From sequence record NC_070998.1: a stretch of DNA of 64,000 bases. One strand, given 5' to 3'. Of the stretch, positions 22,324 through 63,498 are shown one piece after another; position 1 is the stretch's first letter; each line of letters starts with the position of its first letter. Below the pieces are notes generated by a model that worked only from the letters and a program-made list of their open reading frames with translations, did not search any database and had not been told where the DNA came from. The translations under genes and the position numbers were made by a program.

Positions 22324-22400
22324 TGGTGGGCCTGGTGCGATTTGAACGCACTACCTAAGCCTTATGAGGACTCAGCTCTGACCAAGTGAGCTACAGGCCC
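22324..22400 (-). tRNA. tRNA-CAT, probably Ile2 (lysidine) rather than Met
   Basis: Full cloverleaf, loop CTCATAA, encoded CCA; C4-G69 and C5-G68 match TilS/Ile determinants. Confidence 0.85.
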
Positions 22401-22420
22401 TTGATTTACAAAACTTTTAT

Positions 22421-22924
22421 CTATAGCTTGAGCGTGTATCCCATATTCCGACAAACTTTTCTGTACTCTTCAAGATTAAATACTCCATTACAATCCGTGT
22501 ATTTAATCAAAGTGTTCATAGGTAATCCGGTGATTTCACAAGCTATTCTACATGTGGGATAACGTTTACCGTTAACATTCCATCCGGTCTTTTTGCGTAG
22601 CTTTTTTAGAGCGGCGCGATGTTTTTCTTCTGAGTCCCACCAGTTATCTTTACTTGTCCCTTTCATAAGGTGTTCTGGATTACAACGCCTTCTATTATGA
22701 CATGTATGTCTAACCACTTCTTCTTTTGTTATTTCACCATTGAAGACTTTATATACAAACCTATGAACAGACTCATTCTTACCAAGAAACCCATTTGGAT
22801 GAAATTGACCATAACCACCGCTAAGAGATCTGGTCCATTCCCAACATTTGTTTTCTTGATTAATAAAAATATGTGGTTTGATTTTATCTTCAAAAATAGT
22901 AAACAGTTCTTGATTAATCGTCAT
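22421..22924 (-). mobile_element. HNH endonuclease within the tRNA cluster
   Basis: CWEW, GYG, VHR and HTCHNRRRCNPEHL motifs; ATG at 22924 after TGGTG SD (track start at 22942 is TTG). Confidence 0.85.
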
Positions 22925-22944
22925 TTTATCACCATTAATCAAAT

Positions 22945-22977
22945 AGGTCGGAGCTCTAACCGCTGAGCTAAAGACCC
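22945..22977 (-). pseudogene. 5' half of a tRNA (positions 1-33), truncated at the anticodon
   Basis: GGGTCTT TA GCTC AGCGGTTA GAGC T CCGAC CT then runs into the HNH leader; no matching 3' half seen. Confidence 0.8.
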
Positions 22978-22984
22978 TGTAAAA

Positions 22985-23061
22985 TGGTGAGCTCGGTGCG
23001 ACTTGAACGCACGACAGGAAGCTTAGAAGGCTTCTATTCTATCCAACTGAATTACGAGCTC
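22985..23061 (-). tRNA. tRNA-Arg(TCT)
   Basis: Cloverleaf, stem GAAGC/GCTTC, loop CTTCTAA, encoded CCA. Confidence 0.93.
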
Positions 23062-23070
23062 TGAATAGGT

Positions 23071-23252
23071 GGGTAGGAACAAATCCTACCCGACATGTAT
23101 TACTTCGTTCTATCCCCAAGGTGCGCAAATGTCCGACCCGGTTTAGGGTTGAAATTATCAAGTGGTAGATTCGGAAGTAATAATGTTCTTTGAAATAGGG
23201 CGAGATGTTAGACCGGACTTTATACCGGTATCTCCTGGTGGTAAGTTCACCA
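23071..23252. ncRNA. Second candidate structured RNA (~180 nt)
   Basis: Four adjacent helices (GGGTAGGA/TCCTACCC, ATTACTTC/GAAGTAAT, GAGAT-ACCGG/CCGGT-ATCTC, TGGTG/CACCA); strand unresolved. Confidence 0.45.
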
Positions 23253-23328
23253 AGCAACTTATTTTCAGTCTACTAACATCTCTAAGTCGAGTAACTAGAT
23301 TAACTATTTACTTCTACTATACTTCAAC

Positions 23329-23336
23329 ATAATATA
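23329..23336 (-). promoter_or_regulatory. Early-type promoter pointing into the tRNA/ncRNA island
   Basis: Minus-strand TATATTAT just inside the terminator at 23361..23391. Confidence 0.5.
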
Positions 23337-23360
23337 AACATTATGCTTATTAAATAAAAA

Positions 23361-23391
23361 TACTCCTAGTTAGTTGGAGTAACTAGGAGTA
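23361..23391. terminator. Hairpin terminator
   Basis: TACTCCTAGTTA-GTTGGAG-TAACTAGGAGTA flanked by A tracts. Confidence 0.75.
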
Positions 23392-23987
23392 AAACAAAAA
23401 CGCATGGAAGCATTTTTGAACGGCTCGTTACTTTTTAATTAACTCTTTATAAAAACTAATTAAAAAGTAAGTGTTGATTTAACACCTACAAAAATAAACC
23501 CTACAGGAAAAAGAACAAAACAATGAAAAGAAAACCAACGCACGAAGAACCCCGAGTTCTTCCTTAAGAACACTTTGTTAAATATCCTTAAGGAAGAGAA
23601 GATGTAGGGATCATCTTCTCTGGAATAACAAGCACCTAAACGTACATGAAAGCAAGGGAATACTTTCCTAATAGTAACTCTTTTAGAATTAACATTAGGA
23701 AAGCCACAGATATCTAGGAGGAGGAAAATATCTGTGACTTTTTATTACGGAGGCTTTTCAAATGCAAGAAGCTAACTGTTAGCGGCAGTCTGACTTCTTT
23801 AAGTTCACTTAATAAAAATAAACTTAAAGAAATAAGGTAACAAATAATATTAGATGCTACCTTAAACCAAAGCGGTATAAAAACAATCAAGGATCCGATC
23901 ATGAAAAACACTACTGGTAACTACCGAACGTTTTTCTTTCACATATAATAAATAACTTGTTGTAAATAAATAAAAATATTTAAGTCC

Positions 23988-24011
23988 CATAATTTTTCAG
24001 ATAGATATTAT
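23988..24011 (+). promoter_or_regulatory. Variant early promoter
   Basis: CATAATTTTTCAGATAGATATTAT; same variant at 30791 and 58277. Confidence 0.6.
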
Positions 24012-24067
24012 TTTAATGATAAACTAGTGAGGTTTAATTTTAACCTTAAGTGTAGAGAGGGTAGTTT

Positions 24068-24481
24068 ATGAGACTATTTGGTTGTGAAGAAAAGGTAAGT
24101 GGAAGAGATCGACAAGTTTTCGTGTTTAAGGATTTTGTTATTAAACTTCCTAGAACTGAAAGCTGGTTGTCATTTGTGAGAGGACTATGTTCCAACCTTA
24201 AGGAAATTGAAACTGTTACCAATTACGATGGGTTGTTTCCAGATCAGATCATGGAGATAAAGTGGTCGGGATTTTTCGGGATCGTACTTGTAGTTAAACG
24301 CTACCAGGAAGTTAGGGATGTGTCTGAACATAGATGCAGGTTCTTTAACAGACTGGAACGAATTTACGGTGCTGATACATCTGATTGGAAATTCATCTGG
24401 GATGAAGATAACAAAGTCTTTAATTACGGCTGGGACAAATACGGACGGCTCGTAAAATTAGATATTGGGGTTTATTACTGA
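24068..24481 (+). CDS. Minimal protein-kinase-like protein A1
   Basis: GRDRQV loop, VIK, alphaC Glu, DNKVFN catalytic loop, VKLDIG; ends 3 aa later. Confidence 0.65.
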   Translation: MRLFGCEEKVSGRDRQVFVFKDFVIKLPRTESWLSFVRGLCSNLKEIETVTNYDGLFPDQIMEIKWSGFFGIVLVVKRYQEVRDVSEHRCRFFNRLERIYGADTSDWKFIWDEDNKVFNYGWDKYGRLVKLDIGVYY

Positions 24482-24882
24482 TGAAGCTCTTTACACTCCC
24501 AATAAATCCTGGGACTACAAGAAATATTTTAATCTTTAAACATTTTGTAATAAAACTTCCAAGAACGTGTAGTTGGGATCTTTGGAAACCCAATCTTAGT
24601 GATTTTAAAGCTAGTCTTGCAGTAAATAGATTGGAGCGCAAGAACATCAAACAAAATCAGGATGTTCCCGGAATCCCTAAGTTATATTTTTCAGACCCCT
24701 TTGGTTTTATCATCATTATGAAACGTTATCGAAAGTTTGACTCGGTAGCTCAGTACGTAAAACTTTATGATGAACTCATTAAAACATCGAGGTTGGAAAA
24801 AGAGTTCTGGGAAGATGATGCCTGTATCAGTAATTTTGGTTTAGACGAAAACAATCAAATTGTAAAAATTGACTTAGGTTAG
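24481..24882 (+). CDS. Minimal protein-kinase-like protein B1
   Basis: GTTRNI, VIK, NRLE, DACISN, terminal VKIDLG; TGATG coupling to A1. Confidence 0.65.
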   Translation: MKLFTLPINPGTTRNILIFKHFVIKLPRTCSWDLWKPNLSDFKASLAVNRLERKNIKQNQDVPGIPKLYFSDPFGFIIIMKRYRKFDSVAQYVKLYDELIKTSRLEKEFWEDDACISNFGLDENNQIVKIDLG

Positions 24883-24891
24883 GAGTGGTAT

Positions 24892-25506
24892 ATGAACTTT
24901 GATCAAATTAAGAAACGTGTTCAGCTTAATTTGCGTAATGCGTTTTCTGTAACTCATGTTAAACAGGAGTTGGTTAATCAAAAACTCATTAAAGACATGA
25001 GAGTACTGTGTGAATTTCGGGTCGAGTGCATTAGTTTTGTACTTAACAACGAGGAGAAACACTTTATCTTTTATATCGATAAACTCGATGGTCTTTATTT
25101 CACTAGGAGTAAAGAAGGGATGTTGGACGAACTTACTTCTAGAATACGTTATTACGATTTTACCTTTGAACTCACCGATGATCCTGAGTACCGTAATGAC
25201 ATCACCGGTAAACTTCTGGAAAGTATTATCGGTCGTGAAGCTCGTCAGCAGATGCACAACACTTTCAACTTCTGGAAGGAAGAAGCACAAGCCCGAGGCA
25301 ATAACTTCTTTTACACACTAGGTTACAAAGTAACTGGGTACAATAAACGCACCATGTCGTTTACAGCTGACTTTGAACTTAACGTTCGAAAAGAGGATGA
25401 AGACGAATTTATCAGTTATCGTGGTCAGTTTGTCGATGGTTCTGCTGTTAACATTAAAACAGACTGGAATGGTGTTTATGTGACACTTTCCGATATCTTC
25501 TATTAA
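24892..25506 (+). CDS. Hypothetical early protein
   Basis: 204 aa, AGGAG SD, terminator at 25523..25540. Confidence 0.75.
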   Translation: MNFDQIKKRVQLNLRNAFSVTHVKQELVNQKLIKDMRVLCEFRVECISFVLNNEEKHFIFYIDKLDGLYFTRSKEGMLDELTSRIRYYDFTFELTDDPEYRNDITGKLLESIIGREARQQMHNTFNFWKEEAQARGNNFFYTLGYKVTGYNKRTMSFTADFELNVRKEDEDEFISYRGQFVDGSAVNIKTDWNGVYVTLSDIFY

Positions 25507-29208: not shown

Positions 29209-29390
29209 AGAACAGTTTATGCTAAGTTCATCAGGATTGATAATACTTACTAGTTTATTGATAAAGGCTGTAACTAGTAAACTAGAGTTTACACCTGGAA
29301 CGTTACAAGATTCAGATTTCTACGCTTTAATTAAATCAATTGGTGAAAATCTAGTTTATTAAACTTTTACATTAAATCTAGGAGAAGAAA

Positions 29391-29897
29391 ATGAAACTAA
29401 CAATGCGTGAAGTTAATCTCATGATTAACAATAACATCTATCTCTTTGGGAAATTCCTGGATAAGGAGATAGATCGAGTAGAGATCAAGTTACCGGATAA
29501 CGAAGAAGTGGGAGTTGATCGCACTATTGTTTTCCAACATGGCACTGAAGAGAATGGGGTGATACAGTTTATTACTGGTGATAAGGATCCGATCACAAAG
29601 AAGATCAAGATTAAAGTACGGGAAGAGGAACTCCACGTAAAACTTGCATCTAAACTGGAGCTGGCAGAGGCATTAATTCAGCGAGAACTGGGGGACATTA
29701 TGCTGGAATCCAGTTTCAATGAAATGGTGGATGATCCGGAAGTGAATAAGCAGGTGTGTCCATTTATTTCCAATAAGAGAATTGATGAGTACGTTCTCAC
29801 ATCCACACAGGAACTGGATGGTAGATTGTCAATAATTTTGTTGAGTCTTTATATTCAAGGTTCGTACTGGATTGATCGACCCATGGAAGTAAAATAA
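29391..29897 (+). CDS. Hypothetical early protein
   Basis: 168 aa, TCTAGGAGAAGAAA leader, terminator at 29913..29944. Confidence 0.72.
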   Translation: MKLTMREVNLMINNNIYLFGKFLDKEIDRVEIKLPDNEEVGVDRTIVFQHGTEENGVIQFITGDKDPITKKIKIKVREEELHVKLASKLELAEALIQRELGDIMLESSFNEMVDDPEVNKQVCPFISNKRIDEYVLTSTQELDGRLSIILLSLYIQGSYWIDRPMEVK

Positions 29898-29981
29898 ATA
29901 ATAACTAACGATAACTTACTCTGGGCCTTAACCCAGAGTAAGTTCTGTTTTTCATATTACTAATAAGTCTAGGAGAAGAAA

Positions 29982-30341
29982 ATGAAATTACGTATGGATG
30001 TATTGAAAAGTAACATTGGTTCTAAAAGTGTAGAACTTGTTAAGTTTATTCGTAAAGAGATTGAAGAGGTCAGTTTTGCTATAACTGTTGATATGGATTA
30101 CCGGATGGTAATGAAACCAGCTTACGGATCACTTTACTCCACTTCCGTAATTGATACAGTTACCAAAGAAGTAAAGGATGAGGTAAACCATAGACAACGT
30201 TTCTTTGGTCATCTGGAAAGATTACACGGTAACGATATACCTTGTTGGAATTTTGTTTGGGATGAAGACAACAAGGTATTTAACTATGGCTGGGATAAAT
30301 ACGGTAGATTAGTAAAAATAGATTTAGGGATTTTTCACTAA
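29982..30341 (+). CDS. Chimeric kinase-like protein A2 (C-terminal half only)
   Basis: C-terminal WDEDNKVFNYGWDKYGRLVK matches A1; unrelated N-terminus lacks Gly loop and VIK. Confidence 0.62.
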   Translation: MKLRMDVLKSNIGSKSVELVKFIRKEIEEVSFAITVDMDYRMVMKPAYGSLYSTSVIDTVTKEVKDEVNHRQRFFGHLERLHGNDIPCWNFVWDEDNKVFNYGWDKYGRLVKIDLGIFH

Positions 30342-30706
30342 TGTTTATTAATCGTAAAGGATGTACTAGAACGGTTTTGGTTTTTAATGACTTTGTGATT
30401 AAAATTCCAACCTTAAACTCTTGGGAGCTTTTTCTTCATGGTCTGCTGGCAAATATTACTGAAGAAAGGTTTAGTAGGGAGTTAGATAATCGATTAGGTC
30501 TAGTCCCCATGTATTATGGTAGTAAGCTGGGGATTTATGTTGTTAGTAAAAGAGCCAGAGAAGTAAAGCACCGTGGGTTGTTCTGGGTAGAATTGGGAAG
30601 ATTAGCGGCCTTATCAGATCTTCATCCTGACTTTTGGTATCACGATGCAAAACCCGAAAACTTTGGATATATTAATAATCAACTTGTAAAAATTGACCTA
30701 GGTTAG
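30341..30706 (+). CDS. Minimal protein-kinase-like protein B2
   Basis: GCTRTV, VIK, NITEE, HDAKPENFG, terminal VKIDLG; 121 aa; TAATG coupling. Confidence 0.72.
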   Translation: MFINRKGCTRTVLVFNDFVIKIPTLNSWELFLHGLLANITEERFSRELDNRLGLVPMYYGSKLGIYVVSKRAREVKHRGLFWVELGRLAALSDLHPDFWYHDAKPENFGYINNQLVKIDLG

Positions 30707-30715
30707 GAGTAGCAT

Positions 30716-30757
30716 ATGAACTTTGATCAAATTAAGAAACGCGGACTAAATACATAA
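30716..30757 (+). pseudogene. Truncated copy of the 5' end of 24892..25506
   Basis: MNFDQIKKR-GLNT*; ATGAACTTTGATCAAATTAAGAAACG identical to the sequence at 24892. Confidence 0.8.
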
Positions 30758-30774
30758 GACAATTTAATTTAGGT

Positions 30775-30800
30775 TCTATAATTTTTCACATAGATATTAT
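30775..30800 (+). promoter_or_regulatory. Variant early promoter
   Basis: TTCTATAATTTTTCACATAGATATTAT. Confidence 0.6.
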
Positions 30801-30843
30801 TTCTATGTAATGTTACAATATGTATTTCAAAGGAGTGTAGAAA

Positions 30844-35304: not shown

Positions 35305-35331
35305 TTCTATAATTTTTCAAACCTATATTAT
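35305..35331 (+). promoter_or_regulatory. Early promoter
   Basis: TTCTATAATTTTTCAAACCTATATTAT. Confidence 0.75.
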
Positions 35332-35427
35332 TATTGTGTACCAGTAGGAAGAGTTTTAATTTTGACTAAGGAGTTTATCATGTAACTATAATCAAATCAC
35401 CTATCTAATTAGCACAGGGTCACTAGG

Positions 35428-58259: not shown

Positions 58260-58286
58260 TCCTATATTTTTTCAGATAGATATTAT
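58260..58286 (+). promoter_or_regulatory. Variant early promoter
   Basis: CCTATATTTTTTCAGATAGATATTAT after terminator 58214..58240. Confidence 0.6.
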
Positions 58287-58317
58287 TTAAGTGTTATTCT
58301 AGGGGAGTGTTTAAAAA

Positions 58318-63408: not shown

Positions 63409-63498
63409 GACAAAAGTTTCCTTTTATTAATTTTTTACAAGCCCTATAATATTTCAGACCGATATTATTAGAATGTAATTCTAGGGAGATATTTAAAA

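Follow-up and report, generated by a model that had tools for sequence, protein, structure and literature searches.

Introduction

How much of the protein kinase fold can a protein lose and still be a kinase? The question is raised by a locus in the first 64 kb of the Aeromonas jumbo phage PS1 (MN032614.2, 237 kb, genus Ferozepurvirus), a stretch referred to below as the window and numbered as in MN032614.2. Here two overlapping genes, A1 and B1, and a paralogue further downstream, B2, encode very small proteins that carry the motifs of a kinase and then stop at the motif equivalent to DFG. PS1 is related to jumbo phages with genes for chimallin and multisubunit RNA polymerases (PMC10321303). 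The original prediction, made from the letters of the window, took the products of A1, B1 and B2 for members of a family of ultra-small kinase-like proteins. The analysis described here shows that the family is genuine and large, and structure prediction supports the kinase-like fold well.

A hidden Markov model (HMM) of the family, run over every open reading frame (ORF) in the window, finds four members and no more:

24068-24481, + strand: A1, A-type mini kinase-like protein of 137 amino acids (aa); GenBank hypothetical protein PS1_0017
24481-24882, + strand: B1, B1-type paralogue of 133 aa; GenBank hypothetical protein PS1_0018
29982-30341, + strand: A2, a chimeric or degenerate copy, 119 aa; GenBank hypothetical protein PS1_0028
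30341-30706, + strand: B2, B2-type mini kinase-like protein of 121 aa; GenBank hypothetical protein PS1_0029

The coordinates and lengths of A1, B1 and B2 are as originally described; A2 is an addition to that list.

A kinase-like core that ends at the metal-binding motif

All of the motifs claimed for the three proteins (the Gly loop, Lys, Glu, D-x4-N and VK[IL]D[LI]G) are present. A1 has G12-x-x-R15-x-V17 (GRDRQV), K26, E46, DNKVFN and VKLDIG; B2 has G7-x-T-R10-x-V12 (GCTRTV), K21, E41, HDAKPEN and VKIDLG; and B1 has GTTRNI, the Lys, the Glu, DACISN, in which the catalytic Asp and Asn are kept, and VKIDLG. In each of them the beta3 Lys stands in the context FVIK[LI]P. VK[LI]D[IL]G is followed by three residues in A1 and forms the extreme C-terminus of B1 and of B2, placing the chain end two to five residues after the metal-binding Asp.

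The three proteins match PHROG 4301, annotated 'unknown function' (A1 E 5e-18, B1 E 1e-13, B2 E 3e-28); a PHROG profile search with A2 gives no match, to 4301 or otherwise. When 1.84 billion cluster representatives (50% identity clusters) were searched exhaustively with a profile, at least 1,196 proteins matched at E<=1e-3, of which 566 reached E<=1e-10. Among the 150 best of these 1,196 matches, most are 108-135 aa long, with alignments reaching the C-terminus. By tblastn the gene is found in 103 GenBank phage records of very diverse kinds, including 121Q-like jumbo coliphages, the T4-like JS10, the N4-like phiG17, Erwinia phage Y3, and phages of Shewanella, Salmonella and Klebsiella; carriers that infect E. 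coli K-12 are JS10, Skure, Sharanji and the 121Q group. In many unrelated lytic phages the gene lies among small hypothetical genes in accessory regions, and most of the roughly 100 phages outside the Aeromonas A/B clade have one copy each.

Conservation was assessed in 148 diverse members drawn from the 1,196 clusters, using B2 numbering throughout. K21, E41 and D119 are invariant (148/148), and G7, R10, V12, P23, G34, N38, G64, G109 and V116 are conserved in at least 93%. The Gly-rich loop has the form G-x-[TS]-R-x-V, with T or S at position 9 and G7 and R10 each present in 147 of the 148. Position 102 is acidic in every member (D in 102, E in 46), K104 is kept in 83%, and position 107 is N in 106 and S in 40 (N/S in 99%). 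The catalytic loop takes two covarying forms, DxKxxN in 76 members and ExKxxS in 39, with a handful mixed; the latter form is predominant among metagenomic members. Such covariation between D/E102 and N/S107 is expected of one co-adapted active site. Twelve residues past N107 lies D119, in a metal-binding motif that is generally D-Y-G (Y in 89%) and is D-L/I-G in PS1. Lys, Glu and the metal-binding Asp, all three listed in the original prediction, are the fixed points of the family.

The end point is equally constant. The tail past D119 is three residues long in 82 members and two in 24 (together 106/148, 72%), with a median protein length of 124 aa and tails of 20-40 aa in a few. Since this end point is common across members, stopping right past the motif must be a selected property and not an accident of PS1. 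A1 itself is under strong purifying selection, given its ratio of non-synonymous to synonymous substitution rates (dN/dS) of 0.05-0.09 against the AVP1 and ACP1 orthologues, for which synonymous sites are near saturation.

Existing annotation says little about these proteins. Scans of A1, B1, A2 and B2 with Pfam, NCBIfam and PADLOC gave nothing relevant, and there was no significant match of the four to a curated kinase model (Pfam PF00069, PF07714, PF01163, PF06293 and similar). Pfam on the 148 members gave stray sub-threshold matches, to PIP49_C in three and ABC1 in two, and a check for fused domains in ten longer members gave a single N-terminal DUF5522. A word-index search with the family profile returned 316 proteins, none with a Pfam domain or a name beyond 'hypothetical'. 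Two members do carry kinase labels in their records: gp186 of Erwinia phage AH04 is called a 'serine/threonine kinase' and the pEa_SNUABM_5 member an 'STE family protein kinase catalytic domain containing protein'. When the AH04 protein, which has a tail, was itself used for a word-index search, the matches were close relatives alone, with no Pfam-annotated longer kinases among them. The 'virion structural protein' label in Shewanella phage SXP01 proved to belong to adjoining genes and not to the family gene. Literature searches for a description of the PHROG 4301 family found none.

Predicted fold

AlphaFold2 models built without templates have a predicted local distance difference test score (pLDDT) of 90.3 for B2, with a predicted template-modelling score (pTM) of 0.79 from 10 aligned sequences, and a pLDDT of 84.3 for A1, from 122 sequences. 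The elements follow one another as in a kinase. In B2 the Gly-rich loop lies between strands 2-4 and 10-14, K21 is in the next strand (18-23) and E41 in a long helix (28-47); two strands come next, then a helix some 14 residues long and a second, short one, after which the catalytic loop leads through a pair of short strands to D119 and the chain end. Neither model has any element beyond the strand at 114-117.

Foldseek searches of the PDB place the models among kinase-like folds with probabilities of 0.97-1.0 and template-modelling (TM) scores, relative to the query, of 0.5-0.62. The matches are Rio2, PRPK, CK2, TTK, BRaf, APH(2''), Lpg2603, WbdD, POMK, MTR kinase and Ark1, those at the top for A1 being Rio2, WbdD, PRPK and Ark1; the sole non-kinase fold in the list is gyrase, at a probability of 0.1-0.2. 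Among the predicted viral structures of BFVD, the B1 model lies on the B2 model at a TM of 0.91. Next comes a 209-aa 'protein kinase domain-containing protein' of Ralstonia phage RP12 (E 3e-8, TM 0.82, 23% identity), and further matches are uncharacterised phage proteins of 140-270 aa and kinases of giant viruses and Bacillus phages.

Sequence profiles point the same way, each with a score that is non-significant alone. The family profile aligns sDaKpeNFG...VkiDYG over SDLKPANF...LIDFG of TTK (E 0.085), and hhalign against the PKA kinase domain (sequence checked against 1atp) aligns it over residues 161-186 and puts D102, K104, N107 and D119 on D166, K168, N171 and D184 (E 0.098). A match to Cmr1 in the PDB, obtained with a profile of four sequences, was rejected as spurious. 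Spacings between the key residues are close to those of PKA: Lys to Glu is 20 in the family and 19 in PKA, catalytic Asp to Asn is 5 in both, and Asn to metal-binding Asp is 12 against 13. The distance from Glu to catalytic Asp is 61 against 75, which shows that the alphaD/alphaE region has been shortened.

The proteins are Hanks subdomains I-VII without any of VIII-XI, in fold about the first two-thirds of a protein kinase. Subdomains I, II, III, VIb and VII can each be recognised, and the activation segment with APE, the alphaF Asp, alphaG-alphaI and the invariant Arg are all missing. Because these later subdomains are absent and curated kinase models give no match, the family is best filed as a radically truncated variant outside any named kinase family, very probably descended from the protein-kinase-like superfamily. 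The kinase-like fold that had been proposed for A1, B1 and B2, together with the catalytic core, is on these models well supported.

Are these proteins kinases?

We favour the explanation that the proteins are kinase cores that bind Mg-ATP and transfer its phosphate, and would place its likelihood slightly above even. Phosphotransfer is probably, by a similarly modest estimate, their most likely activity, because the conserved residues are exactly the ones with which protein kinases grip Mg-ATP and position the acceptor hydroxyl, and they lie on the right elements of confident models. The core that has been kept comprises a five-stranded N-lobe, the Gly-rich loop, the Lys/Glu pair, one alphaE-like helix, the D/E-x-K-x-x-N/S loop and the Mg-binding Asp; in such an enzyme Mg-ATP would be bound canonically and its gamma-phosphate transferred. 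The active site would be permanently open, without an activation segment, a P+1 loop or helices alphaF-alphaI, and lacking these it would have to draw its choice of substrate from the protein surface, from association with itself or a paralogue, or from the substrate. An open site with no peptide groove fits a promiscuous protein kinase, an enzyme with a large non-protein substrate, or an enzyme completed by oligomerisation.

The most likely role would be modification of host macromolecules soon after infection. Proteins would rank first as substrates, as for the promiscuous T7 kinase (T7K), which like JSS1_004 phosphorylates many host proteins and disarms defence systems (PMC13645617). RNA would rank second, as for archaeal ArkI, a eukaryotic-type protein kinase (ePK) that lacks subdomains VIII and X and phosphorylates tRNA (PMC9095486). 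In the Aeromonas jumbo phages, A and B1, and sometimes B2, are passed on as one compact cassette in which translation is often coupled, and their products may cooperate. ATP binding and catalysis, like the timing, the substrate and any association, are properties that we infer. A bolder form of this reading, which we regard as possible and rather unlikely, would make the ~120-residue protein fully competent and the smallest kinase-fold enzyme, with alphaF and the C-lobe dispensable; A, B1 and B2 of the Aeromonas phages would then form a hetero-oligomer with a composite substrate site, and within the first minutes of an infection this would phosphorylate proteins or tRNA belonging to the host's defences or translation machinery.

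Several points weigh against an active kinase. To our knowledge, all known active kinase-fold enzymes keep helices after DFG. The alphaF helix anchors both hydrophobic spines, and a fold without it may fail to position its substrates. The Foldseek E-values against the PDB are modest (3e-3 to 8e-2), as is expected when a 120-residue query covers half of each target. The links to kinases made from sequence profiles are all sub-significant: the TTK match is the best against the PDB, none is obtained with a deeper alignment, and hhalign gives a probability below 2% both against PKA and against gp205, the annotated 'protein kinase' of phage 121Q, with which no alignment is produced. The Gly loop has a single Gly rather than GxGxxG, and the His and Arg of HRD are absent from the catalytic loop. 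B1-type proteins have C, T or H in place of the catalytic-loop Lys (Cys in B1 of PS1), and two of them have Q for the catalytic-loop Asn. Finally, association with a B protein cannot be obligatory, since A occurs alone in AVP1, pAEv1810, ACP1 and CF8.

Some of these points lead directly to a different reading, in which the family is a nucleotide-binding pseudoenzyme: the N-lobe and metal site would bind ATP, a nucleotide signal or a host protein, and the protein would serve as an inhibitor, sponge or switch without phosphotransfer. Everything in the fold that binds substrate and anchors the spines is missing, the catalytic loop of the B1 subfamily is degraded, small phage sponges for nucleotide signals are common, with an Acb2/Tad1-like neighbour at one locus, and the crystal structure of ArkI holds guanosine in a pocket equivalent to the ePK ATP site (PMC9095486). 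Binding alone, however, would not require an acidic residue at position 102 in all 148 members, covarying with the Mg-binding Asn or Ser, and most of them have Lys104, the residue that in Ser/Thr kinases touches the gamma-phosphate; we consider the pseudoenzyme unlikely. Of much the same low probability, in our estimate, is an active kinase whose target is not a protein. Its substrate could be a sugar, a lipid head group, a nucleotide or RNA, the last phosphorylated for example on a tRNA 2'-OH or at a 5' end. The elements that bind peptides are absent, the family is basic (median isoelectric point (pI) 9.07, with a pI above 8 in 115/148), the gene abuts rnlB in JS10-like T4-type phages and adjoins tRNA genes in PS1, and the Foldseek matches of A1 include WbdD, POMK, MTR kinase, APH and Ark1, the last of which (172 aa) has the best TM relative to target size. 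Yet the D-x-K-P-E-N loop has the Ser/Thr protein-kinase form, the rnlB link is found in one phage group, the clustering of 19 loci shows no conserved RNA-repair neighbours, and the family lacks subdomains IX and XI and the basic tRNA-binding helix of ArkI.

The family might instead be the N-terminal half of a split kinase, with the missing helices coming in trans from a second phage protein, from a host protein or from a paralogue (A together with B1 or B2). Pairs of kinase and pseudokinase are a known theme, and cassettes of A, B1 and sometimes B2 with overlapping stop and start codons recur. Against this, all-against-all ORF clustering of the 19 loci finds no conserved partner gene able to supply a C-lobe, downstream genes show no BLAST similarity between phages, and a single copy is the rule in most of them. 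Nor could paralogues provide the post-DFG helices, since all end at the same point, and we think a split kinase improbable. That the proteins are decaying fragments of a full-length kinase gene, or artefacts of ORF calling, would be in keeping with the nature of A2, with the remnant of 13 codons that follows B2, with the PHROG 4301 profile, which is 225 positions long, and with the few tailed members. More than 1,000 diverged clusters that share an end point in differing genomic settings, the strong purifying selection and the confident, compact models leave this idea with hardly any credence, and for A1, B1 and B2 it is effectively refuted.

Comparison with known systems

RIO2, Bud32/PRPK and ArkI (170-290 aa) include the best Foldseek matches and share with the PS1 proteins the N-lobe topology, the Lys-Glu pair, the D-x4-N loop and the metal-binding Asp, as well as the lack of an activation loop and subdomain VIII. 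They keep at least two helices past the metal-binding Asp, whereas the PS1 proteins stop 0-3 residues past the Gly of D-x-G. ArkI, a minimal core acting on a non-protein substrate, keeps subdomains IX and XI and a basic alpha7 YKR (PMC9095486). The PS1 proteins have no significant sequence similarity to this group, no winged helix-turn-helix or flexible loop of the RIO type, and no KEOPS partners.

The T7 kinase gp0.7 and JSS1_004 (PHROG 2828) are likewise kinase-fold proteins of lytic phages, and a T7K homologue is reported from G17-like jumbophages. The PS1 proteins have no match to PHROG 2828 at E<=1, and the DPV motif of the T7K family (PMC13645617) contrasts with D-[YLI]-G in PHROG 4301. 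The T7K kinase domain is also about twice as long, continues past the metal-binding motif, and is joined to a C-terminal shut-off/DNA-binding domain.

The closest structural relatives outside the family are the RP12 protein and the uncharacterised 160-270-aa phage proteins in BFVD, which run 40-90 residues beyond the DFG equivalent and probably stand for a longer ancestral form of the 120-aa family. The HopBF1-type bacterial effectors (~200 aa) are said to have a 'minimal protein kinase fold', stripped down yet active; by that description they are set apart by a C-lobe and some 80 additional residues. E. coli DgkA, at 121 aa, has been called the smallest known kinase (PMC4703834). It is the same size as the family proteins and has an unrelated fold, being an integral-membrane trimer with shared active sites, so its relevance is as a size benchmark and a precedent for active sites built by oligomers, and nothing more.

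Pairing of A and B genes

In PS1 the stop codon of A1 and the start codon of B1 share one nucleotide (nt), in TGATG at 24479-24483, and A2 and B2 are joined in the same way by TAATG at 30339-30343. B1 and B2 lack the well-spaced Shine-Dalgarno sequence (GGAG) that is present before neighbouring genes. The overlaps and the missing GGAG fit coupling by termination and reinitiation, in agreement with the translational coupling that had been predicted for these genes.

The types can be told apart by signature. The A type has GRDRxV ... NLKE ... DNKVFNYGWDKYG.LVK.DLG followed by three residues, the B1 type IPKLYFxDPFGFI.IMKRY, and the B2 type HRGLFWV.L ... DxKPEN. In the family tree A1 and B1 fall in a clade of six leaves with a support of 0.99, and B2 lies elsewhere, near sequences from other phages. 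B1-type orthologues occur in ZPAH34, AerS_266, LAh10, AhC3_1 and the metagenomic contigs L033 and L036. The genes are arranged in the following ways:

Metagenomic contigs L033 and L036/L037 (two phages): A, B1 and B2 contiguous
ZPAH34 and AerS_266 (Chaoshanvirus): A and B1 with a 4-nt overlap
LAh10 (Ludhianavirus): one ORF between A and B1, preceded by an annotated Ser/Thr phosphatase gene
AhC3_1: B1-type gene 2.7 kb upstream of A
AVP1, pAEv1810 and ACP1 (the closest PS1 relatives), and CF8: A only

The pair as a universal unit is thus rejected, since sister phages have A only. The claim of an A/B pair holds in a narrower form, for several Aeromonas jumbo-phage genera and the two metagenomic phages, where the genes are adjacent and often overlapping, and to that extent the suggestion of A/B heterodimers has partial support. 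The genes downstream of the cassette in PS1, ZPAH34, LAh10, CF8, L033 and L036 have no mutual BLAST similarity. Linkage of A and B1 is therefore conserved well beyond its surroundings, and this suggests a joint function, although the linkage itself is dispensable.

Phosphatase genes also occur near A-type genes. The annotated Ser/Thr protein phosphatase gene of LAh10 (L038 2249-2857) is directly upstream of the A-type gene, and CYTH-like phosphatase genes lie 2-3 kb off in AerS_266 and CF8 (L041 824-1306; L043 5846-6382). These neighbours may reflect a pairing of kinase and phosphatase, or mere shared synteny.

Organisation of the PS1 locus

A1 and B1 are the first genes past a gene-free stretch of 1 kb and a switch of strand, and a sequence repeated in the window lies just before them. 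The 24-nt motif ATAATTTTTCASATAGATATTATT has four matches in the window against 0.00 expected, and there is a fifth, weaker copy. The copies, all intergenic, are at 23989-24012, 30778-30801, ~35309-35332, 58264-58287 and 63446-63469. Downstream of the first four, + strand ORFs begin at 24068, 30844, 35428 and 58318, in that order; past the fifth, which is in a gap, no + strand ORF is listed up to the end of the window. The copy at 58264 directly follows a hairpin. The motif is probably a phage-specific promoter. A scan for sigma-70 promoters found fewer sites than in shuffled sequences (17 against 29), with none positioned for A1, and this deficit agrees with a phage-specific rather than a host promoter. 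The features of the locus, all on the + strand, are:

23978-24018, + strand: promoter-like motif copy 1, core ATAATTTTTCAGATAGATATTATT at 23989-24012; ends 56 nt before the A1 start
24850-24917, + strand: junction repeat copy 1, comprising the last 33 nt of B1, a ribosome binding site (RBS) and the first 26 nt of gene 24892
29913-29944, + strand: terminator-like hairpin, a 13 bp stem then a T-run; 38 nt before A2
30674-30757, + strand: junction repeat copy 2, including a 13-codon remnant (30716-30757, MNFDQIKKRGLNT and a stop) of the 5' end of gene 24892
30767-30807, + strand: promoter-like motif copy 2, at the start of the next transcription unit (gene 30844)

These features qualify the original placing of the genes at the head of a promoter-proximal early operon. 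By position A1 and B1 are promoter-proximal, and they may be early. A2 and B2, however, lie past the hairpin and before the next motif copy, and so at the tail of the A1 unit; B2 is not promoter-proximal.

The junction repeats suggest how this arrangement arose. The 68 nt at 24850-24917 are 93% identical to 30674-30741, and this repeat, with the remnant of gene 24892 after B2, is evidence of a segmental duplication or recombination that would have split an ancestral A-B1-B2 array. A2 is clearly a recombination product, a non-catalytic chimera. Its last 50 residues are A-type, with alphaE, the catalytic loop and VKIDLG plus three residues, and the family HMM matches this C-terminal half alone (E 1e-14). 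The 69 residues that make up the N-terminal part of A2 have neither the Gly loop nor the Lys and Glu, without which ATP could not be bound canonically, and its RBS and first ~34 aa resemble those of the preceding gene 29391 (region 29373-29416). Over the last 50 codons A2 and the 3' half of A1 have 70% nt identity and a dN/dS of 0.16; the C-terminal part of A2 is still under purifying selection.

Upstream of A1, some 1 kb (23062-24067) is without a convincing ORF, and its minus strand has three terminator-like hairpins (23361-23391, 23395-23418 and 23467-23489). Rfam and tRNA scans of this intergenic region found solely the known tRNA-Arg. Beyond it, on the minus strand (22324-23061), an HNH endonuclease gene (22421-22942) separates tRNA-Met from tRNA-Arg in PS1. 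Only about 10 nt, and no gene, separate these two tRNA genes in AVP1, and the PS1 arrangement looks like a homing-endonuclease insertion.

Settings of the family gene elsewhere

Neighbours of the family gene in other genomes vary, and across the 19 clustered loci no other gene is conserved beside it. The small ORFs that follow it in 121Q and phiG17 are unrelated. In an SU10-like metagenomic phage (L024 1-3359, 6038-6337) the gene lies between one for a 4,381-aa polyvalent protein with ParB, LPD1, 2-5 RNA ligase and Acb1-like matches and a 99-aa gene with a weak match to the Acb2/Tad1 hairpin, a setting that looks like a counter-defence neighbourhood. A DNA methyltransferase gene is another of the neighbours seen. 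Just 2 nt separate the end of the family gene from the start of rnlB (RNA ligase 2) in the T4-like JS10 (L003 3986-4354, 4356-5363) and in NC-G, which hints at a possible RNA-related role in that lineage. In 121Q (L002 183-857, 4001-4372) gp205, of 224 aa and with no Pfam match, is encoded 3 kb upstream of the family member gp215, and jumbo coliphages may thus encode two unrelated kinase-like proteins. A 134-aa member is also found in the chromosome of Methylococcus sp. EFPC2 (L023 6001-6405), among fatty-acid synthesis, TilS-like and efflux genes, with no obvious prophage genes within 6 kb.

Implications

For this family the fold assignment is solid and the truncation striking; its activity and biological role are entirely predicted. 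In kinase structural biology the alphaF helix and C-lobe are regarded as an indispensable scaffold. A widespread family that has every ATP- and metal-binding residue and none of that scaffold provides a direct test of this view. If active, its members would be by far the smallest kinase-fold enzymes, would rival the unrelated DgkA as the smallest kinase of any kind, and would define a minimal catalytic unit useful for enzyme design. More than 1,000 unannotated clusters would at the same time join the short list of phage kinase families, and would do so when T7-type kinases have just been shown to be broad counter-defence weapons. The occurrence of members in phages of E. coli K-12 makes genetics and phosphoproteomics straightforward. 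Even if inactive, the family would represent kinase-derived nucleotide-binding modules of an unusual class.

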